Positions 24,482 through 38,200 are shown, counted from the stretch's first letter. The stretch: 64,000 nt of DNA from Bispira polyomma (GCA_965649765.1 OZ287750.1:69564001-69628000), one strand, 5' to 3'. Numbers and translations are program-made. The notes: generated from the letters alone by a model not told the origin.

Positions 24482-27400
24482 AGGGGGAGACACATTGGTA
24501 GAATAATTGATGTACATCATTTATTAGGATTATCTAAGGTAATATTTGGCAGATGTATTTATGAAGGAAAATCATGCTGTGTATTATTAAATCATGCACT
24601 TTGCCAAACCTCGGAGTAATTTTTCCTTAAAAAAATATGGATCCGTCGGCACTAACTCTGCGTACTCAGCTGCATACTATATTGCCAGCTTTCCCACAAA
24701 CATGCCAGGGAAGAGATTCGAACCGATCATTGGAGATATGGGAGGCAAATGAGTTATCACTAATGATCCTAGTTTACTGTTATGACAGGGCATAATTTAA
24801 AGGAAAAAAATAAGCATGACTTATAAATACAACTTCTACTTGTTACTTCAATAATTATTTGTAGTTGAAGTATTTGTACAGAATACATTATATTTCATAA
24901 CTATTTTAAGGGGTGCCTATAATATTATTATGCAAATAACTATTAGTCTATATTATGTAATAGATATGGCATCCCAACAATATTTTTGATCAAGTATGAA
25001 ATAATATCCAAATTATAATTTTTGTAGTGTCATTAAGTCAAGGTAAATACGTCTTCAAAGCTTTAGCTGATAGCAATACCTGTATCTTCTTTTAACAAAC
25101 ATATATTTTCAGGGGGAAGGTGGAAATTGCACTGCATGTTGTGAAGATAATTATGCTGTTGGAGGTTTTGGTGAAGATTCTTTCACCCTGTCTTGAGTAA
25201 TCAGCAGCAGTAAGCAATGAGGGACAATTTAACTGGTAGTGTTGTGAATTCATTCCTTCTTATGTAATAAAACAGTGTTTTAATTGATTGAAGTTGGACT
25301 GTTTTACAAAGTTTCACTATATTGAATTTCCAAAAGGCAACCATTGTAATATAAACTGAAAACAGTACAAATGTCACATTATTGTCTGTTTAATGGATAA
25401 ATTCTTCTGTTACAATTTACTGCAATAGTAACATGACAAAATCTGATTAAAGTTGAATGGCCAATCCTGTGTGCCATCAGTGATATACCAACAAAACTAA
25501 CTGCTAATGAGATGTTATTGTTAGGTGCTATTGTATAAGAGACATATTATATAATTTTATTATAGATCTATGAATCTTCTCTGATAAATGTGATAGAGCT
25601 AACATATTATGATTTGCATTATCATTGTTCTGTTAGCAGGGAGTTTACTTTCATTTTGTATTCTAAAATTGCTACAACATGGTTTGTTGACCCAGAAGGG
25701 ACTTACACTACAGGCCTTAGCTTTACCTTTATGACCATCATGGCAGTCATAACTTAGTTGAAACATGTTTAATAATCCTACAATGAAACATTGCTAACAT
25801 TGATAATTATAATTTAGCTTCAGATTCGGTCATGTTAAGCTTCTTAAATCATCACAATGCAACGTCCAAGCACATCATATAGTGGTGGAAGGAATACAAG
25901 CAAAAGATTCAGTCTTTATAATGGGACAAATGTTGAAAACATAGGTTTTGGGTGTTTTTTTTTTTACAAAAGTCGTCTCATACCTGCAGGGAGATTAGTC
26001 TATTTCGAAGTCTATCCCGAAATCATGTATCCTTATTTTCTATATTTTGTAATTAGCTGTATCTCCTCATCAAACTTTGCCATTTTGTGGTGTTCTGTGG
26101 CTGGGAAGTTGCTCTGGTGATCAGAAGGTCAGTAGTTTAACTCCTTATCGGGGGAGTTGGTTTAGTGATCACAAGTTCTCCAGTTGGACTCCTGCTGATG
26201 CTGCTTGGTTCACTAGATAACTTCCCTGTTGAAAATATGAACATACCAGTGCATACTGATGACTACCCAGGCTATGTTGTAGGATACGTGATGACTTTAT
26301 TGATTTAGATGCTGCCCTTCACATAGTCGTCAATCGTCGCATAAACGCAGAATACTTCCTGTGTATTTCCGGAAAAGTTATTTATAAACAGAAGCAGAAA
26401 TAGAAGATAAATCAGGTAAGAACGTTAGAATTTTGAATACTTGATTAAAAATAATTATACCTGTGGCAATTACTAAAGAAGTGCCTTAGAATGAATTGCA
26501 TGTCAGTTAAAATTGTTATTATATCACAGAAAAAAGCACCACTGTGGGTGATAATATAAGATTTTGTCAAATACATCTGATATAAAGGTATTTTACAAGA
26601 AATTTCAAATACCATTGTATTGCAAGTGTTTAATTTAATCTATATAAAAATAACAGGCATTGTTTCAGTGTTAACATGTGTATGTAGGTCATTTAAAAAT
26701 TACGAATGAATACCTTTACTGGGAATACGTGCATACCTTTACACAGTATATTCTAACCAACAGCAATACCTGAAACCAGAATATTTTTAACTTTTATTTT
26801 GACTGCTTTACATTGAAAATGTTACACTGTTAGACAGTTGTACAGATAGGACAGTAAATAATCAAGTAAAATCAGTGTATAATCTAAGGTTGCAGTTTTA
26901 AAATTACTTTAGTATCAATTCTAATTACTGTACAAGTAGAAAATATCACTATAAATTAAGCATCAAATGTCAAGTAGGTATATAGCACATTTTACTAATT
27001 AGATTAAATACTGTGAATTCATTTCCATTGGAAATTCATATACAAATCTCTCTGTATGGCCAATAGTGAAAATTTATACCTGTGAATTCCTTACAACTTG
27101 TAAATAGAGATGAAATTTGCTTCTTAGGTTAAATTTTCACTTGTACAATATTTAATTGATACATGTATAATATATATACTCTTTGAAGCATAACCTTGGT
27201 TCACATTCACTGGTGACTCGCCAATGTTAGTTGAATCTCCTTCATTACTTCACGTGGAAAAGTTTGTCAGGTATTTGAAGTAAGCCAGTGGTTTACATTG
27301 CTTCAGCACTGATTTCTTCCACCCTTAAACTTGGCTGCCCTCAATATGACATATAAACTGTTGGCTACACAAGACTTAACTAAATTTTAAAATATGTTAC

Positions 27401-27583
27401 TATATGTAAAATCCTGTGTATTTACTGATTTTCCCGAGGGAGAAATCTGGCCATACAACAAATTATGTTGAAGATGTGACTCAAACAAACTCAACCAATT
27501 TGTATATTGTATTAGCAAACTTTATCAGTGATTCAATTATTAATGTTATTTGCATTAATTGTTTGTTCCTTATTTATTCAGGT

Positions 27584-28215
27584 ATGGAACTATCAGCACT
27601 AGAGACGAGCATCCATGAGTTTTCGGCATCTGGGTCACAAGAAGGATCCTCTCAACCTATCAGACCTACCAACTCAACCTCAACCTCAGACAGTAGAGCT
27701 ACAGGAAAACAATTAAAGAACTTTCCATGTGATGCAGTGGGTTGCAGCTACAGTAGTAAATGTTTATCTTCTTTGAAGAGACATACAATGCGCATGCATC
27801 AAGTAAGAAGATTTTCATGTGACCAATGTGCCAGTAAATTTGCTCTTAAAAGTGAACTCGGAAGACATTTAGCGTGTGTGCATGGGCCCCCTCTGCGATA
27901 AACAATTTAATCATAAAGATGACTATTGTGCACACATCAACAAGCACATGAATATGAGAACGTACAGCTGTAGCAATTGTTCCAGCAAGTTTCGTACACG
28001 CTCCAGCAAGCACATTCATCAAAAACGATGCCTTGCTAGTTTGTCTGTTTCCTATGTGTGGAATGTGCAAACTGACATTCAAGACAAAGGCAGATTTGGA
28101 TCAGCACAAGCAAAAACACAGTGTAACAAAGCATGACAGTGAAAAGTGTGGGAAAAGTTACAAATGGAGGAACAATTTGTTTGCACACAGTAAGAACTGT
28201 ACAGGAAGGTCATAG
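27584..28215 (+). pseudogene. Transposon-borne C2H2 zinc-finger gene (about 6 fingers, 2 frameshifts)
   Basis: Fingers FPCDAVGC..H....H, FSCDQC..H....H, CDKQF..H...H, YSCSNC..H...C, CGMC..H...H and KCGKSY..H...C lie across three consecutive frames. A splice acceptor ttattcAG is at 27581 just before the ATG, and a candidate donor cag|GTAAGA is at 26416. Confidence 0.85.
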
Positions 28216-28359
28216 ACAAATTTTTAAACTGTACGAGGAGTAGTTAATCTCCAGGTTTCATTTATTACTCTCTTTTAGTAATGTCTAAGTAAATACTGAA
28301 TAGACAGTGAATTTATCTTGTGTGTGCATTTTTTTATAAAGATTGTTTGATCTGAGATT

Positions 28360-29200
28360 TTACTGTTATTGTTGTGTTTACAGTTTTATTTTGCATTTTA
28401 TTGTAATTGTTGTCTTACTTGCAATATCAATACACACTATTGTAATCATATACAATTGTTTGATATACATTTGTTTATCCTCACATATACTTTCACTTTT
28501 TGGAAATTATTATTTTTAGGTAAAGAACACATAATGTTTTATTTTGTGTTTTATTGTAATTGTATGTCATTTTTTTTCTATTATCAATATACATTACTGT
28601 AATTGTATATAATTTTTTTCTATTATCAATATACATTACTGTAATTGTATGTCATTTTTTTCTGTTATCAATATACATTACTGTAATTGTACGTAATTTT
28701 TTTTCTAATATCTATATACATTACTGTAGTCATATACAATTGTTTATACATACATTTGTTGATCAACACATCTAGTTTTTTTCTTTTGTGATCATGTAAA
28801 AGGTAGTTATTTTAGGTAAATACAGTTCAAAACTAAGGTTTAATTTTATATATACTGTAATTGTTGGACATTATTGTTTATTACCCATATACATTATTAT
28901 AGTAATATACAAATTTGTTGATATACTTTTTGTTTATCTGCACTTATACATTTTTCTTTGGTCTACATGTCAAATGTGATTTTGAAAGGAACACATTAAA
29001 ATTAAGTTTTCATTTTGCATTTAACTGTAATTGTAAGTGTTTTTTCTATAAGCATTATTCATTACTGTAGTGCTATATAATTTTGTCTGTGCAGATTTGT
29101 TTGTCTACACATTTACTTTTTATCTCTTGTAATTTTGTAAAACTTGCATATATTTTAGTAAAGAACCCATCAAAAATAAAGTTATTTTGTTTTAATCTTA
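28360..29200. repeat. Degenerate AT-rich tandem repeats between the convergent genes
   Basis: ~43-bp units ttttttctattatcaatatacattactgtaattgtat, about 4 copies at 28550-28740, nested in longer imperfect repeats. Confidence 0.8.
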
Positions 29201-29727
29201 TTATTTTAGTAACTTGGATGTCAACTTTAAAGGAGATGCGTGACATTACAATATTCCTGTAAACACATAGCAGCCTTATATAATAAATGGTTTAGGGGAG
29301 TTTATTGCCTGGTGACCTATATTTCTTGTGGTCCAAGTGATTCTCTACAATAATAGATTGGAATTTTATAATTGTTATGTCTCACTAATGTGGTTTAGAA
29401 TCTTGTTTGTTCTTTCATGTCAGAAAGTTTGTCACTGTGGTTTACAGTGTTTTAGCATTGGTTTCTTTCAACCTTTAATTCGGCCACCGTGATATGAACT
29501 AAACTTTTGAAAATATATAGCATAAAACCAACTAAATTCTGATAGTTGTTATAAGATTTGCACCAGAGCACTGGAAGATTTGATATAAATTTCTTAATAA
29601 TAAACTAAAAAAAATTTCATAATTTTATGTTACTTTTATCCTAACATTTTCTATGCTGTTGAGCTTTGCATGCTTTCCACCTGAACCATTAATAGAGAAA
29701 AAATACCATCTATGGCATGTTATATAG

Positions 29728-32700
29728 TCAATTGTCTTCGATGTGTAGTCCTGTTAGCCTCTTTAACAAAGGAATTTTGCTTTCATCTAATTTGTAAAAC
29801 TGTCTCACAGGACGTGCTCTCTTTGCAGGTTCACTAACATCAGACAACTGCCCTCTTTTTCTCTTCTGTTTCCCACGTTTTCGACTAGGATAATAAAACT
29901 AATCATCACTGAAATGAAAAAAAAAGAAATTGTTTTATGAATAAACAAATCAGTTACTTAAAAAATGTGCACGTAGAACAAAGATAATAGTTACAAAAAT
30001 TATCAAATATGTACTCACTAGGCCATTAATGATTGTAGCTGTGTCACCTCTGGCTGCCCATTCCAAATTTCTTCATTTTGTTTGTAGAAGGTTCCTGATT
30101 ATCCTGTATACTTGGAACATCATGTTGTGGAAAGGCCTTCTTTTTCATTGTGATAAAAGCAAAGCCTCTAAAAAGGGATAAATTTCTTCATACTTTTTTT
30201 GAGTTATCATACTATTAAAATTAATACGATACATTTTGCATGATTACAAATAGGAATATACCGATTTATATGTTTTAGCAATTTAAATTTACTTTTATGC
30301 CAGAAAATTATGTATGAGTTACCCATTCGGTATGCGAATTGAATTTTAGCCTTTACAATGTTCAATTTTGACCATTTTTACATTTGACCTTGTTTTCATA
30401 TAAAGTGTCTTAAGTCCTTGTATGATAATTTTATATTTGTCATCTTTTACATACAAAAATGTGACCTTGAAGCTCTCCAAGGTGATGACAGATACTTCTA
30501 GGCCCTGACGTTATATCATGCTCATTATTAGTGTGTCACAATATTACAAGTTAAAGTTTATCTTAAGATTACATGTTTGAATCCATTTTTGTAGCCAGCA
30601 AATCACAAGCTGTAAAAAAACGGAAACTTCTGTAGGTTTCAAAATGTCACTGCCAGCAGAGTCCAAACTGCCAAGTGCCCTGGCATTGTAATGATTACCT
30701 GGAACCATTGCATACAGCTGCAGTCTTCGCTCAATGCCTGTTAGGAGACCTTCATATTCAACAAGTGATATATCCTTTACAAACAGGCCTGGGGGTGGAA
30801 AGATTGAAAAGTCAACATCCTTTAACAGCCATTCTCTGAGAGTTAGCAATTTATGTATCCGTTCTATTGCTGAAATACCAGGTTGATCAACAGCTTCATG
30901 ATAACCACGTATACAACTGCAAAATTTAGCCTCACTAATATCACCATTCTTTCTCATCTTTAACTTCAGCAGAAAAGGTCTTCAGTGCATATGCTGATGA
31001 TTGCCTGTCAATTATATCTTCCACCATTGGTAAACTAAGATCTGTTTTATTTTCTGGATCCATTGCGATTTTATGCCAAGCTTCTTTTTTAATACCAGAC
31101 TTAACAATTTCAGATTTGTAAACCTTGTATCGGCAATTTGTGATTTGATGATGGGGATCCAAGATGTCGAAATGATATTGTCCTATTTCCTTTATGAACT
31201 GTGGCTGTGAATACCATTCAATGGAATCGTTAATAGCCATAATGTCCATCTTATCATGAAAGGGTCCCGTTGATTTCCACTCTGCAAGTTTATCTGGCCA
31301 TATAACCTTTGCATAGATAGAATTGGTGTCTTCCTTTGACAAATGTTTCAACTGGGCTATGTAAACCAAACTAACATCAGTAATTTTGTTGCTTTCCTTC
31401 TGAGGTTTCTTGAGAGTGGTTGCTTCTAGGGATGACCCATCACCACACACTTGGGACAACAGGTTTACAAATAACTGTTTTGACAAACATTTAGAAATCT
31501 TGACTTTATTGGCTTTAAGTATGTCAATTACTGGTTCTATCATAGTTTTTATGTCTTTCACTGTGAAACTTGAATTCAATGTATGTGCATTTGATAACTG
31601 TTGACTGAACTCCGCCAAAGATGTTGATTGCCACTTTTCACAAACTCTTGGCGATTCACTACTTTTCAATACTTTAAGCATGTCTTCTTTACTTGAATCA
31701 TTGAGACAAAATTAATGCTCTTTTACTAAGGCTGGAGGTGCTAATTCCACACTTGTGGATACTTCAACTTCAGCAATGGGACTGTCTGTAACATTGTAAA
31801 ATATCATTTCAAATGTGTCTGTTAAAAATGCTTCATCTTGAGACATAAATAACCATACATCGTTTGGTGTATCCATAGTCACATTGGTAAGGGTTTCTCT
31901 TGCCACCTGTAAATTGACATCTTTGATAACTTGTAGAACATCAAGGTCCAATTCTTGACCTTACACATCACTTCTTGACTGTTAATAACATAATCCTGAA
32001 AATTCTCTTCTGTAGTGGTTTGAACATTATCAAGATGAGATCTTGGTTTGCCATGTGCCTGTTTCGTTTTGTGAAGTCTTTGTAAAATATCTCTTACAAT
32101 TGAATTTCTCCAAAATGTCTCTGTTGCAGGTTTAAGACTTCCAATGTAATATATTGTATCACCGCCATCGCATATTGCTTCTTTAATTTGTACATTAGCA
32201 CCATTATGCACGTTCATACTGCCTGGGAGTAATTGAATTATCTGCTATAGCTTTTTGTTAATTGTGGATTTCTGCATTTTTTAACCAATGTAAAGACCTC
32301 TTTTTGTAACTGTAGCATTGTTAGAGGATTTCCATCAGTATCTCTAATAGCTAATGAAGCCCACTGCCCATCATATGATGAAACAGGCAAATAAATGCCT
32401 TTGTTATGCAGTGCCAAAATCATGCATTTTACGTAAAACCTTTGCTTGTAAGCTGTAACCTTTTAATGCATAGCCAACTGGTAAAGCATGAGCCTGCTCT
32501 GCCTGATAGTGGCGGTACACATCACTTACAACCCAAACTAAAACCTCAGTGCACATGTTTTTGGTTCTTTCATTAGCTTCTTTATTTGCCTATTTGGTGG
32601 TAAAGTAAGCATTACCGAGGGATTCAACTTTTGTTTTAGTTGCCAATGTTACATCATTACTGCCATGGTCATGAAAATCTGGTAACCCTGTTAGTACATC

Positions 32701-35232
32701 TGTGTTATGCTTACAGCTTTGGGCTTTCAAAGGCTTTACTTCAGCTACCAGCTGTGTATTTTCAGCAATGAATAGCTTCATTTGGTCTTTCAGGATTTCT
32801 GTACTTGGATCTCTTTTTCCTGGTCTTCTTGGTTTGTCACCGTTGTAGAGATGTACACATAGAGCTAATATTATAAGCCACAGTGATTCATCATGTTTTA
32901 CTTTAAAAATGGTGGATGATTCATGATTCCAACAAATAAATATCAGTACGTGAGTATCTAGCACAACCATTTCAGAAAGTACTTGTGGAACATAACGTAA
33001 TGGAAATTCATAGAATACATCTGTGGTGAAGATCTTACCAGGCATAGGACACTTGAATTCTAGTCCAAGTTGTACTGGCCCATATGGTGATGTTCTGACA
33101 CTACCATCTGGGCTTACCATATAAAAAGGTTTATCTCCAATCATCAATTCATAAAAGCTGTCTTCAACAAAAGATAGCTTTGGATAAAGGGCTGGTAGAA
33201 CTTTACCCACTAATGTAGCAACTGCATTGATTTTATTGTCTGTCACATGTTTAAATAATCTTTGGGTTTCATCATCTACTAGTTTCTCTTCCCTTCTAAA
33301 TATAACTTTGTGCAAATGTTCTTGCTGTTTATTTAGTGTGTCTAATCCCATAGCTACATAAGCTGAGCTTCCAGTAACTTTAAATTATTTTCTCCTAACA
33401 AACCATTCTTTCGATTTTTGCTTCAGAAATCGAGTATGTAAATTCAAAGGATGTTCCTTCAAGCAAAAATAATTGAATTGTTTCTGTAAATTTAACACAT
33501 CACATTTGCAAAATCTGCTGTCACCATTCATTGAAGCGAGACAGCACATAATATCATCTGAGCATTGCAAAAGTTGTTTCACACAATGGTCTATTTGCAA
33601 AACCGAAGTGTGCAAAGCGCTTACAATTAAAGCATATTTGGATTTTCTCCAGTCAACTCCACCTAACTTTTTAAATTTTTCCTTTGCCATGTTTTACTTT
33701 ACTTTATGTTTTCTTAGTTCACATTGTGTCTTTGCAATAATTTTCAACTGACCTTGGTCATTGACTTTTTTTTACATTTTTCACCTGCTGACAACTCATA
33801 AAGGTAATTTTATCAATAATCAAACCTTCCAACCAGTTGATGTCCTTGTTTAATGATCCTAACTCTTCATCTAAACGATCATACTTTTCCCTCAGGGTAG
33901 GTTGGCCTTCAAAGCCAAAAAGATTGATCTCTGAATCTTTACCTGTGCCCCTGTGGTTTAGCTTTTTACCTAAAATATACATAGTGTATTAATTGAATAC
34001 CATAAAGTATTATGTCAAGGTAAATCTCTAAAACCTATATCGCATGCAAAGAATATATAACATGATCAAGGCGTTTTGGTTATGAATACCTTCTAAAAAT
34101 CAGAGGTTAAAGACGTCCATCTTACTGTACATGGCCACTTTTGGTCGATCATTAATGGGTAATAATTTGGAAATATATGTCAGCAAAATAGAAAATATAC
34201 CACACATACAAAATATGGTATCATTTAAACATATCTTTTATGCAAGTTGAAAAAAAATATTGTTTACTGAAAAATGCCATATCATATCAACACATACTTT
34301 GCGTACTTTCTGGAAACATGTTAACAAAGGTGGTAATATTATTAAATTTGAATCTTCTATAAAGTTTTTACCATCAACACAGATCTTGTGTGGCTTGTTT
34401 GGTCCAATTCGTGCTAATATTTCGACCATTGGCTTTAAAATTTCAGGGTTCACATCTTTACTCTGTAGAATCTCTGTACTTTTGTTATCATCATAGAGGA
34501 GGCTTAATGATGGAACAGCAAAATTTATGTGTGCACTAGATGGATGAAGACTGTCTGTTTTTTTCATCATTTAGTGATAGCTTTTCTACAAGCAGACCTA
34601 AATGTTTATAGCCTGTCAAAAAATTTGCCAAAACGTTTGGCTACAGGATTGTACCTCATCTGTCTGGTAGTGTCACAGGAAAAAAACTCCACTACATCCC
34701 AAAATAAAACCAAAGCAATGTTATCTAAAGGTATTTCTTTGTTTGCAAGAAGTTGTAAAAACTTAACAAAAGTAGAATTTTGGTTGTCTTCTTGTAAATA
34801 ATGCAATACATCTGGCATTAGTCCTATTATATCTTTCATTAAGCATTCATTAGATGTCATATCAACTTCTGATATTGCATCTCGCAGTTGTTCTGTCCTT
34901 CTGTTTGGATCATCGTTGAAAAGGCTTCTTTTGGAAGACTTAGAATTTTGTTCAATATGCATTTTCTTTGGTGCTGGACTTTTTGAAGATGTGACATTGG
35001 ATACAGTTATAGTTCGGGCATTCTGGTCAACCATAATAGTTTCAACGTCTAATTCTTTTGGTGTTATATTTATAACTTTTGACACTAATAATACTTTTGC
35101 AGTATTTGGGCAAATAGTTTTTTCCCTGTATTTTATTGGTAGGTCATTGTGGATCTTTAGCTAATGTTCTATCACAATTGTGAAAGATTCTTGAAAAGAA
35201 CAATATCCACACAGACAGAGTTCCCAATCCAT
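29728..35232 (-). pseudogene. P-element-like DDE transposase with embedded YqaJ/lambda-exonuclease domain (~1,500 aa, 4 inferred exons, multiple stops and frameshifts)
   Basis: Motif order: N-terminal CGYC..H....H finger; INFAVPS; KICVDG|KK across GT-AG intron 34371..33970; YqaJ domain; CTEVLVWVV...LPVGY; SSYDGQ; LDPHHQITNCR (DxxH); DRQSSAYALKTFSAEV; EAKFC; YNARALGSLD; basic C-terminal exon RKRGKQKRKR. Confidence 0.75.
32870..33425 (-). other. YqaJ/lambda-exonuclease-like PD-(D/E)xK domain within the transposase
   Basis: KQKSKEWFVRRK*FKVTGSS, SPDG, EFKCP, YVPQVLSEM, FICW and VKHDESLW are the family motifs in canonical order. Confidence 0.88.
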
Positions 35233-38200
35233 CACTGCATCTATACATAAAACATTATGACAAAAATGTTCACCAAGTTATTCCATAGCAAATTTACAAA
35301 TTTAAATTATAGCATTCATTAAAATTATATCATATAATTTCATTCCTTCAATTTTGACCTTCCGTAACTACACTTCTTAAAATTAATTTTGTAAGGCTTT
35401 TTTCAAAGTATTCACGGACAAGGTATAGCACTATTCCTGGTAAAGTTATGGTAATTTATCAAGGTATTCTTGGTAAAGGTATTTCACGGAGGAACTAAAT
35501 TGTTATATAATTATTAATACTGATAAACAAGAGCAATACAAAAAACATCAAACAAATGTGTTACCAATATCTTAAGATCTATGTAATAAAAATGTACAAA
35601 AGTCGATAATTTCCATGTATAAACAATGAAAACGTGATAATCCACTGTTTGTCTTAAACCTTTACCGAGAATACACAGGAAGTATTCCGCGTTTATGTGA
35701 CGATTGACGACTGTGCTTCAGAAGATGTCTTGCAGAAGGCTTATCAATATTTAATCCTGTTAATATGGATAGTGCCCATTTCAGTATAAAATATATCATT
35801 GGAACCATGATATATAACCAAATTGGATAAATGATACAAACAGAGGTCTCAAACCCATGTTTTAATGTGAAGTTTTATTATTTCCATATTTAAGGAAAAC
35901 ATACTTAAGAATAATTAGCAACTAAAACGTGTTTCAATGACCTCTAATTGATGATGTAAATATAATAAGATATTTTTTAATGTTATTTTTATTCTAAATA
36001 GCGCGCTGCAATCTTAGAAATAGTATGTAAGCTTTCATTGATTAGTTGGAAGGAATTAGATTTTGCTGAGTGTGCAGCCATCTTGGAAATAATATGTAAG
36101 GCCTTCATGGAGTGGTTCAAAGCAATTGACTCGTCCAAACTGAGAGGTGTCAGATATGCTTGAGTATATACTGACTATATCAACATTAGTATATTTCACA
36201 CTTTGTGCCTGTGTCTTTTTTGAAAGACAACTCTGGTTATTAAATTGTTATGCATTGACAATTTTGATGAGATCACAGTTCTATTTGACCTTAACCATAT
36301 CTTAACCTAACATAACTCTAACAATATTCCCCAATTATGGCTTACCTTAGACCTCTAAGGTAACCTTTTATTTATATCTTTCTTTTTTAACCAGTCTGGA
36401 TATAATTAGTATATAAAACATATATTTTCCCAACCACTAGTCTCTCTCACACTTTCACTCACACCAAACTCTCAAGGCACGATGTACCCTAGTTCAGTTT
36501 TGGTTGACATTCTTTCAACACGTTTGTGTCATATTGCGACAGGCAGTTCAGTGGAAACCAGAACAAGGTAGTTGGTCTTGGTTTACTACTGTGTTATGAC
36601 AGCAAGTGTACTGCCAACATTGCTCTGACTATCACAGAGGTAGGAGGTGAGTTTGTTACTACTGCAACACAGAGGCCCCCAAAACACTGGCTCTAATAAG
36701 AATGAGAATATATGTCTGTAGTCCATAGGACTACAAGCAAGGACATAAGTTTGAGCATTCACAATTTAGTAAATCTAAACTGTCGTATGTTTAAATTGTA
36801 GTGTCTACAGCCTATTATACATCTGTGTACAATAGAAGGATGTGTCACAAATTATTAAAAAAGCATGCAGCGTTTACTGTAACATATTATTTTTTTTTAT
36901 TTTTGTAAGAGACTCTATTCTGAAATATAGTTAACTGGAACTACTTTGTTTATTCCCAGAATCTAAGTGACAAAGTTGAGGGATTATTTTTGGTTACAAA
37001 AAGATAGATGCAAAGTTGTAGTTGTAATTTAGTTTCTCTCGGTCTTGTGTGTGTTTGATAACACACAGTGTTGTTATAATTGTATGCAAAGTTTTCTTAA
37101 CATAGTATTTGCCTGCATTCTGCAATCCCAATTTTACACAGGTACAGTAATTATCATTTTACCAGACTGAAGACAGGGTCTTGCATAAGACGACTTATCA
37201 GTGAAGACCACTTATCAGGTTTAAAGAAGACCACTTATCAAAGTTATTTATTCTGCTACTTGTGATAGGACCCTATGGCAGAAGAAAGCCATTTTAAGTA
37301 TAAATCAGAGCCTCTATTTTAAGTCTGGAGAGAAGCCAGGTCTCTGGCATTCCTGTGGTTTACCTACTGGGCCAGAGTGGCATAAAACTAGACATTTACT
37401 GCTTTACTTACAACTATTAAAATAAGTAGTTTATCATTAAAAGGTCACTTAGTCTGAATAGCCATCTAAAATTGTTGTTATCATTGTCTGATTAGATTTA
37501 TCAATATATTGCTTGTCAGTGCCGCTTCAACTTCATTACCTTTTTGTGTTATTTTATGACAGTTTCTAGACAGTTTCTAACATTGTAATGGGACCAAGTC
37601 TTTTCGCCATGTTGAACATCTATAATCAAGAAGATCAAATTACATGGTATAGATTTTGTTTTTCATGGCTCTGCTGAATATTGGGTACACTGCCTGACAA
37701 TTCATGTATGTTCATTAGTTTTAATCAAATATAGTTCTGCTGACTAATCATAATCATTTTTATTAATGCTGATAAATCTGGAACATAATTAGTTAGTAGG
37801 TGTATTAAAGGTGTATTGTGATATATAATGGGTTTTATGTTACCACCATCCTCTATACCTATATCTGTTTCACATTTACTGGTAATTTATTAATACCTTT
37901 TAACCAAAACAACATAGGGGAGGGGTTAATTTAAACAGTGAAGGGGTAACCGAAAATCAATTTTTAAGCTACCCTGTGAGGTAATCTTCAATTGTTGGGG
38001 TAACTTAAACTTGGCGGTAGGGTGTGGTGAAGTATAATTTTAACTTTTAACACTAATTGTCAAAAAGAGAGAATTATTATTATACTGCATAACCTTGTGC
38101 AAAACCAAATACACTGTTTTATCCATGCAAGGGGTACTTATCTCAAAACCTTAAAGTTTATTCTGTAGGTGTGATGAAATGAGGGCTAATTTGGGGAAAA

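Follow-up and report, generated by a model that had tools for sequence, protein, structure and literature searches.

Target site duplication (TSD) length and terminal bases serve as diagnostic characters of transposon superfamilies. The P element transposase attacks its target with an 8-bp stagger, cuts the donor with a 17-nt stagger and uses GTP (PMC7776569). Transib has been described as the sole superfamily with 5-bp TSDs, in addition to CACAATG ends and GC-rich targets, and the combination of 5-bp TSDs with CAC ends formed part of the original case for deriving the V(D)J signals from Transib (PMC1131882). At the level of the enzyme, a D(2)H motif characterises the hAT/P/MuDR/Kolobok/Dada group (PMC9587614). 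Some Dada transposases also contain a DEDDy exonuclease between the second catalytic Asp and the DxxH motif, for which a role in processing the cleaved ends has been proposed (PMC3706591). Here, we describe a 9,394-bp two-gene DNA transposon, now defective, at positions 26322-35715 of a 64,000-nucleotide stretch of the Bispira polyomma genome (GCA_965649765.1 OZ287750.1:69564001-69628000; hereafter, the window), and compare it with these systems.

An earlier note on this DNA had suggested that the family mixes P and Transib/RAG traits, or else that inserted domains may have altered the target geometry. The first of these suggestions is upheld: the mixture is real and family-wide, in that a P-like enzyme goes together with 5-bp TSDs and CAC(N)G ends throughout the family, and it does not indicate kinship with Transib/RAG. 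The window element is very probably an old, inactivated copy of a cut-and-paste transposon from a distinct lineage that is related to, but stands outside, the canonical P element/THAP9 group. This P-related lineage is apparently undescribed and possibly has the rank of a superfamily. Among the papers covered by full-text searches (Repbase was outside their scope), no description of this lineage was found in which P element, THAP9, Transib or Kolobok is combined with YqaJ, the nuclease domain present in this transposase; where YqaJ comes up in transposon papers, these deal without exception with the PIF/Harbinger-ISL2EU-Spy group (PMC4482050).

Element ends and target site duplications

The element is bounded by inverted arms at 26322-26377 (plus strand) and 35660-35715 (minus strand), to which the repeat finder assigned 56 nt and 89% complementarity. 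Both arms are directly adjoined by CTTCA, at 26317-26321 on the left and 35716-35720 on the right; these two copies are identical, and the match is lost when the flanks are lengthened to 6-9 bp. The left junction (26317-26336) reads gccCTTCA followed by CATAGTCGTCAATCG, and the right junction (35701-35724) reads CGATTGACGACTGTG followed by CTTCAgaag. The left arm starts CATAGTCG, and the outer end of the right arm, reverse-complemented, is CACAGTCG, the form found in the family; the two ends of the window element are thus unlike at position 3 (T on the left, C on the right). Since the listed genomic termini start with CAC, the left-end CATAGTC is CACAGTC with a substitution private to this copy. 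Inward of the arms are subterminal repeats: the motif (G)AATACCTTTAC occurs at 26707-26742, and also within the inverted repeats towards their inner side, and the same motif, as GTATTC..GGTAAAGGTAT, at 35399-35487. These repeats are putative protein-binding sites.

The 1.035-Gb assembly, in which the window lies on contig C3, was searched on both strands with a 27-nt pattern taken from the right end of the window element, at up to three mismatches and with the reversed pattern as a control. The pattern matched 150 forward and 155 reverse sites (about 305 ends), against none for the control, and among the matches listed all start with CAC, in the reading CACAGTC. With the whole element as query, a second long copy was found at C2:36532704-36560270, together with an internally deleted copy on C9 and many short matches to the ends only. 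About 150 copies in the genome are non-autonomous, and what they have in common with the element is the ends only. TSDs were tabulated for 14 independent insertions with both ends paired. Nine of them have an exact 5-bp TSD (CTTCA, ATATA, AGGTT, GTTAA, GGACT, ATTTA, AATGT, GGTTG and TATAC), three others match at four of the five flanking positions without an exact repeat, and a 7-8-bp duplication was seen in none of the 14. From the G+C content (33%), we estimate the probability of a chance match at all five positions at about 0.002 per element. The TSD sequences observed are not GC-rich.

The same features recur in other animals. The spliced transposase was searched one exon at a time; the exon at 30944-31711 (minus strand), compared with 1.84 billion representative proteins, gave 241 homologous proteins at E <= 0.001. 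The long relatives are 1,200-1,700 residues in length, and the few that are named, annotated either as "YqaJ viral recombinase domain-containing protein" or as hypothetical protein, come from the gastropod Batillaria attramentaria, the annelid Owenia fusiformis and the cephalochordate Branchiostoma belcheri. Five contigs encoding relatives were taken, and inverted ends were located on each. Two of the elements are from one ENA assembly: L055 (3189-14273; ends CACAGTC and CACGGTC; TSD TAGCC) and L056 (7479-19026; ends CACTGGG; TSD GATGT). The others are from Owenia (L058, 9381-20182; ends CACGAGG and CACGGGG; TSD ATGTA), from Batillaria (L057, 6094-17318; ends CACAGTG within inverted repeats of about 780 bp; TSD TTGTT) and from B. 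belcheri (L065, JALCYT010000066.1, 9086-18724; ends CACGGGG, 629 bp long and 100% identical; TSD GACAT). All five have an exact 5-bp TSD, with identity failing at 6 bp, and CAC(N)G ends, so that mollusc, annelid and amphioxus members alike end 5'-CAC(N)G...C(N)GTG-3' between 5-bp flanking repeats. When both sets are pooled, an exact 5-bp TSD is present in 14 of 19 elements belonging to six families, and a 7-8-bp duplication in none. Across these six families, the proteins are only 25-48% identical. When 12 ends were aligned, C1 and A2 showed no variation, and conservation was at least 90% for C3 and G5; neither a common nonamer nor an asymmetric spacing of the 12/23 type is visible in these 12 ends.

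These data bear out most of what had been claimed about the ends in the earlier note, namely an exact 5-bp CTTCA duplication without one of 7-8 bp, CACAGTC at the right end and CATAGTC at the left. Terminal inverted repeats are present as claimed, with a length of 56 nt in place of the 55 bp given there. The note had also held that other copies with 7-8-bp TSDs or shifted termini would make CTTCA coincidental, and neither was encountered in the 14 same-genome or the five foreign elements.

Several further observations concern individual ends and copies. The sequence ACGTCAC, at about positions 14-21, is common to the ends of three families (the window, as TCGTCAC; L057; L065; alignment A3) and may be a conserved protein-binding site of the inverted repeats, some 14-21 nt from the terminus. 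The L065 copy, with an annotated gene of 1,536 residues and a clean GACAT TSD, looks like a very recent insertion. On C2, three copies of the same 4.5-4.75-kb non-autonomous element (L031, L032, L029 and L030; C2:68324671-68329212, 68388592-68393132 and 68462386-68467136) have identical flanks and the same AGGTT TSD and lie about 64-74 kb apart, which indicates that the element inserted once and that the host region was then duplicated, segmentally or in tandem. The copy L036 (C9:39654107-39658728) is internally deleted, with 4.6 kb remaining; its TSD is unreadable because about 15 terminal bases are missing at one end.

Fold of the transposase and position of the nuclease

All 42 long relatives have the same order of parts, that is, an N-terminal region, a YqaJ domain and a core of about 700 residues. 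The core alignment (A1) contains conserved FDGQW, D..HLL.N.R and GSL..E.FF motifs; in alignments A1 and A2, the D(2)H motif (D..HLL.N.R) does not vary and E.FF hardly does. One Pfam family alone recurs, namely PF21787, which represents the N-terminal half of an RNase H domain of P element type; it was found in 11 of 34 members (best E 3.4e-6) and above the cut-off in relative P0026. None of the 34 members matched the Pfam RAG1 family, and the 18 families that came back with E no higher than 0.1 included none of CACTA or hAT type. Pfam gave no match at all for the N-terminal pieces of relatives, and PDB sequence searches with two window exons gave no match either.

Structural comparison points in the same direction as PF21787. 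A first AlphaFold model covered the core only, with a predicted local distance difference test score (pLDDT) of 76.6. In Foldseek, this model placed the P element transposase structure 6P5A on top (E 4.6e-4, probability 1.0), with 6PE2 at E 9.4e-4 and RAG1 at E 0.13 or worse, and VIA-align gave Z 23.8 for the P element transposase, 8.8 for RAG1 and 7.8 for Hermes. A shape search of the ESM Atlas returned as nearest clusters only TNP-like proteins, which carry PF21787, PF21788 and PF21789, with bacterial IS4-type transposases far behind. The alignments of the first model began just past Asp 1, and it was therefore suspected that the first RNase H strand was missing from it. A second model, of relative P0132 with alignment A2, has 1,039 residues starting at the DGKK strand (pLDDT 84.8; predicted template modelling score 0.73). 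Its VIA-align match to 6P5A has Z 28.8 over 304 residues at 2.8 A, extends from model residue 1 to 1034 and from chain residue 212 to 569, and spans D230. The corresponding values were Z 11.8 over 298 residues at 4.7 A for HzTransib, 10.8 over 307 at 4.9 A for the best RAG1, 9.6 over 305 at 4.8 A for BbRAGL and 9.6 over 267 at 6.2 A for Hermes. In these models, the RNase H core of the relatives, their D(2)H motif, their ExFF Glu motif and a helical insertion domain superpose on the Drosophila P element transposase.

The strand on which the second model begins has the motif hydrophobic-x-hydrophobic-DGKK-I...G-[DE]-x-[DN]-L-x-G-x-E in the relatives, and the Asp of DGKK is invariant in 26 of them. 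At the corresponding position, a canonical P-like protein encoded in the same genome has LLIDEMSI...GNIDLG, and its LQFVF, PIAHY and STDG strands follow within about 20 residues. The strand motifs of the family, DGKKI...GDxDLxG, LVFM... and PVAY..., correspond one for one with those of this protein, and about 450 residues intervene between the DGKK strand and the strands that match LQFVF, PIAHY and STDG. According to the second model, the intervening residues form a coiled coil and a YqaJ nuclease, located inside the RNase H fold after the Asp 1 strand or strands. The inserted domain aligned with Lambda exonuclease (Z 16.0, 190 residues, 3.0 A) and with LHK-Exo (Z 16.0, 172 residues, 2.3 A). 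The nuclease motifs SPDG, E-x-K-C-P and Y..Q (D...ExK...Q) are conserved in all family members. The Pfam YqaJ family is above the cut-off in relatives and below it in the window copy (E 0.0018), and this sub-threshold match was all that Pfam yielded on the transposase side from the window's own exons.

Another arrangement was considered at first and later overturned. In that reading, the nuclease was N-terminal to the RNase H fold and the acidic residues of the window's VLVWVVSDVYR strand supplied Asp 1. However, the first-model alignments with P, RAG1 and Hermes start a few residues after the Asp 1 of each of these proteins, the upstream DGKK Asp is invariant, and the model that includes the DGKK strand aligns from residue 212 of the P chain with a better Z and root-mean-square deviation. 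As a separate observation, the strand that follows the nuclease (positions 39-42 of alignment A1; 32512-32544 in the window) ends in a nearly invariant S-D-L-D-R, with conservation of at least 90% at the second Asp and an invariant Arg; Tyr replaces that Asp in the window and in its closest relative, P0001.

As modelled, the transposase is P-like by fold and motifs and not Transib/RAG-like. The earlier note had called it P-like, with which the Z scores, the PF21787 matches and the TNP-like Atlas neighbours are in accord. Its placement of D1 in KICVDG and of D2 in YDGQW agrees with the invariant DGKK Asp and with an alignment that reaches past D230, and the second-model alignment likewise places a lambda-exonuclease-type domain where the note had put it, after the D1 strand and inside the RNase H fold. 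A further proposal, that KxxxDG at D1 and YD at D2 recall RAG1/Transib, was not supported as a sign of kinship: the fold comparison does not favour those families.

Gene remnants in the window and the state of the family

The transposase gene survives as a pseudogene on the minus strand (30575-35211), recognised by tblastn with P0001, P0004 and P0026 and comprising the N-terminal region, the YqaJ domain and the P-like core. From its 5' side, KICVDGK at 34367-34387 corresponds to the first RNase H strand, with catalytic Asp 1 at codon 34373-34375. A GT-AG intron of 402 nt in phase 1 (33970-34371), found by direct reading, splits the DGKK motif, and splicing restores the family motif; the window gene therefore has at least one true intron, while the gene of relative P0001 is intronless. 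The YqaJ/lambda-exonuclease domain occupies 32833-33423, with SPDGS at 33100-33114, LEFKCP at 33046-33063 and YVPQVLSEM at 32968-32994, and contains an in-frame TAA stop at 33385-33387. An in-frame TAG stop (32590-32592) lies in the linker ahead of the catalytic core, whose VLVWVVSDVYR (32512-32544), the RNase H strand after the insertion, is equivalent to the LVFM strand of canonical P-like proteins. Catalytic Asp 2 is in SSYDGQW (32361-32381), which frameshifts near 32440 and 32244 have put out of frame with the sequence on either side. Next come an in-frame TAA stop (31712-31714) and LDPHHQITNCR (31130-31162), which is the D(2)H motif named above (PMC9587614). At 30649-30672, the sequence GSLD/SAGS results from a 36-nt deletion between 30659 and 30660, by which the catalytic Glu motif is gone; the C2 copy keeps this motif, as ENFFGSFQDLHP. 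Comparison with P0001 and the C2 copy gave additional frameshifts near 31950, 30960 and 30617. All of these minus-strand lesions considered, with three stops, several frameshifts and loss of the Glu motif, the window copy is dead.

The C2 copy is likewise interrupted, by stops and large insertions of its own, and a six-frame search of the genome with one exon found no further coding copy beyond fragments on C9. With the window and C2 copies both broken and only fragments on C9, the family no longer has a live autonomous member in this genome. The same genome also contains canonical P-like copies (L060-L064; C7:22323679-22327032, C8:15047071-15050424, C1:54444223-54447576, C1:85245109-85248462 and C7:20289633-20292986), which are about 98.7% identical over more than 3.3 kb, have open frames of 430 residues and match PF21787 at 42 bits as well as PF21788; the copies run beyond the loci examined. 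They represent a young, ordinary P-type family, possibly an active one.

The second gene of the window element is a C2H2 zinc-finger remnant on the plus strand (27416-28200; zf-H2C2_5, E 1.6e-5), convergent with the transposase and spread over three reading frames. In tblastn, these frames are colinear with the zinc-finger protein of L055, and the two share the N-terminal LETSIHE (27599-27619 in the window). Four of six relatives checked (L055, L056, L058 and the P0155 locus) have a multi-finger C2H2 gene that follows the transposase and, being encoded on the other strand, is convergent with it. In the Batillaria element, the C2H2 gene is upstream of the transposase, and in the amphioxus element, also among these six, none was recognised. 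Between the zinc-finger remnant and the 3' end of the transposase is a 42-bp tandem repeat (28551-28728; 4.2 copies, 90% matches).

Movement, rival explanations and known systems

Movement of the family would be by cut and paste, with the two 3'-OH ends joining target phosphates 5 bp apart and gap repair producing the duplication. The two DDE active sites of the assembly would attack at this 5-bp spacing and not at the 8 bp of the P element. The fused nuclease may handle the non-transferred strand, the one that the DDE site leaves. It could cut the 5' strand at the ends, by analogy with TnsA beside TnsB in Tn7, or it could resect the excised ends or the donor gap in the 5'-3' direction, a step that would favour homologous repair and gain of copies. 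The zinc-finger protein or the N-terminal region may bind the subterminal repeats. A bolder version of this scheme, which we consider rather unlikely, is that of an animal lineage of superfamily rank in which a P-type core and a nuclease doing second-strand work make up a single-chain counterpart of TnsA/TnsB. Its 5-bp stagger and CAC(A)GTG ends would then be either independent of Transib/RAG or ancestral to a wider P-Transib-hAT group, and Transib would cease to be the only source of the V(D)J recombination signal sequences (RSS) to which these hallmarks point.

The ends alone would suggest a divergent Transib/RAG-like transposon, with termini that reflect Transib ancestry and a resemblance to P that is that of any RNase H fold. 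CAC ends occur in 19 of 19 elements and the 5-bp TSD, described for Transib alone (PMC1131882), in nearly all; the Batillaria terminus, CACAGTG, is the RSS heptamer, the two-gene layout recalls RAG1L-RAG2L, and HzTransib and RAG1 do align at Z 10-12. We nevertheless regard this ancestry as very unlikely, given the closer fit to P (Z 28.8 at 2.8 A; HzTransib, 11.8 at 4.7 A; RAG1, 10.8), the D(2)H and ExFF motifs of P type, and PF21787 in 11 of 34 members and TNP-like nearest Atlas clusters where a Pfam RAG1 match is lacking. The 12 aligned ends, moreover, have no conserved nonamer or 12/23 asymmetry, and the TSDs are not GC-rich, unlike Transib targets (PMC1131882). The Transib-like ends could also belong to a non-autonomous Transib-type element, mobilised in trans by a true Transib enzyme, in which the P-like/YqaJ gene is a passenger. 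Most copies in the genome are indeed non-autonomous, and both protein-coding ones are broken. However, the same gene pair lies within CAC...GTG ends and 5-bp TSDs in six families whose proteins are only 25-48% identical, so that repeated capture is implausible, and in the Branchiostoma copy an open gene is enclosed by 629-bp ends that are 100% identical; a passenger gene is slightly less probable still than Transib ancestry. Least credible of all is that CTTCA and the CAC ends are coincidental or misplaced and that the true boundaries, with a 7-8-bp TSD, lie elsewhere. A lone 5-bp match could be due to chance and the window ends do differ at position 3, but 19 independent insertions in six families have the same boundaries, 14 of them with an exact 5-bp TSD and none with one of 7-8 bp, and the terminal pattern has 305 genomic matches against none for its control.

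Improbable, though to a lesser degree than these, is a closer relationship with a D(2)H superfamily that lacks a solved structure (Kolobok, Dada, CACTA/Chapaev or MuDR), to which P would merely be the sole solved neighbour. CACTA/Chapaev elements also start with CAC, and the family profile fails to find the P element transposase by sequence. As mentioned, an exonuclease also occurs in some Dada transposases, where it lies between Asp 2 and DxxH (PMC3706591). However, Kolobok is characterised by TTAA duplications and RR..YY ends (PMC9587614) and Dada by 6-7-bp TSDs at small-RNA-gene targets (PMC3706591), and CACTA-type families are absent from the 18 Pfam families returned. The Atlas search, which extends beyond solved structures, gave only TNP-like clusters ahead of the IS4 type, and the strand motifs equal those of the canonical P-like protein one for one.

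Assignment to a distinct lineage related to P must itself be set against several points that weigh on the other side. Kinship with P is argued mainly from predicted structure and from weak Pfam matches. No solved transposase was found when the family profile was compared with PDB sequences in HMMER, and hhalign of this profile with one canonical P-like protein gave E 0.15, over the Asp 2 strand only. The comparison with solved structures is blind to Kolobok, Dada, CACTA/Chapaev and MULE, for which the PDB has none. PF21788, the GTP-binding domain, had no sequence match in the 34 members in Pfam; the 6P5A alignment (chain 212-569) does take in the GTP-binding insertion domain, and the ESM Atlas neighbours carry PF21788. 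A THAP domain was found neither in seven long members (Pfam, E up to 0.01) nor in the N-terminal pieces. With regard to the duplications, the 14 tabulated insertions are about a tenth of the roughly 150 copies; the flanks of one (L044) fit 6 bp (ATAATA), and the duplication of another (L034) is not clearly readable. Finally, the second-strand or resection role of the nuclease, both variants taken together, is something we infer, and we lean towards it with only modest confidence.

If the P-related lineage is accepted, several consequences follow for classification and mechanism. Since a P-type enzyme goes with both traits in molluscs, an annelid and a cephalochordate, elements called Transib by their ends alone may have been wrongly classified. 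Evidently, a catalytic scaffold can be conserved while the spacing of the attack on the target changes from 8 to 5 bp. Moreover, a lambda-exonuclease domain within an RNase H fold is an unusual architecture, and it offers a route to the second-strand question in eukaryotic cut-and-paste enzymes.

Among known systems, Tn7 offers a possible analogy, in that TnsA and TnsB combine a DDE enzyme with a nuclease of the PD-(D/E)xK type and the TSD is 5 bp. Tn7 is bacterial, its two nucleases are separate proteins and TnsA resembles a restriction enzyme and not lambda exonuclease, so that no homology is implied. With the CACTA/Mirage/Chapaev elements, the family shares CAC ends, but their TSD length of 2-4 bp does not fit, and no CACTA-type family was among the Pfam matches. 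In ISL2EU elements, YqaJ is a separate gene and the duplications are 2 bp. The likeness to ISL2EU is that YqaJ is mentioned in papers on this group (PMC4482050), whose enzyme is of the PIF/Harbinger type. The exonuclease of Dada is of another fold and at another position, and Dada makes 6-7-bp TSDs at small-RNA genes (PMC3706591). Kolobok differs by its TTAA TSD and 5'-RR...YY-3' ends (PMC9587614), in contrast to the varied 5-bp TSDs and CAC...GTG ends found here, and hAT by its 8-bp TSD, the low score of Hermes (Z 9.6 at 6.2 A) and the absence of hAT families from the Pfam matches.

Transib and the RAG-like elements share with this family the 5-bp TSD, the CAC start, a convergent two-gene layout (RAG1L-RAG2L) and a DDE enzyme of RNase H fold that contains an insertion domain, and one family member, that of Batillaria, ends in CACAGTG. 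They differ from it by a weaker fold match (4.7-4.9 A), the RAG1-type Pfam domain, an A-rich nonamer behind a 12- or 23-bp spacer that was not seen in the 12 aligned ends here, GC-rich targets and a second gene that encodes a RAG2-like propeller where this family has a zinc-finger protein. P element and THAP9 differ from the family in TSD length (8 bp vs 5 bp; PMC7776569), in its CAC(N)G ends, in the THAP domain and GTP-binding-domain sequence match that were not found here, in its inserted coiled coil and YqaJ domain, in its second, C2H2 gene and in the Asp 1 motif (DEM vs DGKK). Yet it is with P element and THAP9 that the family shares, as modelled, a superposable RNase H core and helical insertion domain, together with PF21787, the D(2)H motif, a Glu motif of the LE-x-FF type, a large insertion between Asp 2 and Glu, a presumed cut-and-paste mode of movement, and inverted ends accompanied by subterminal repeats.

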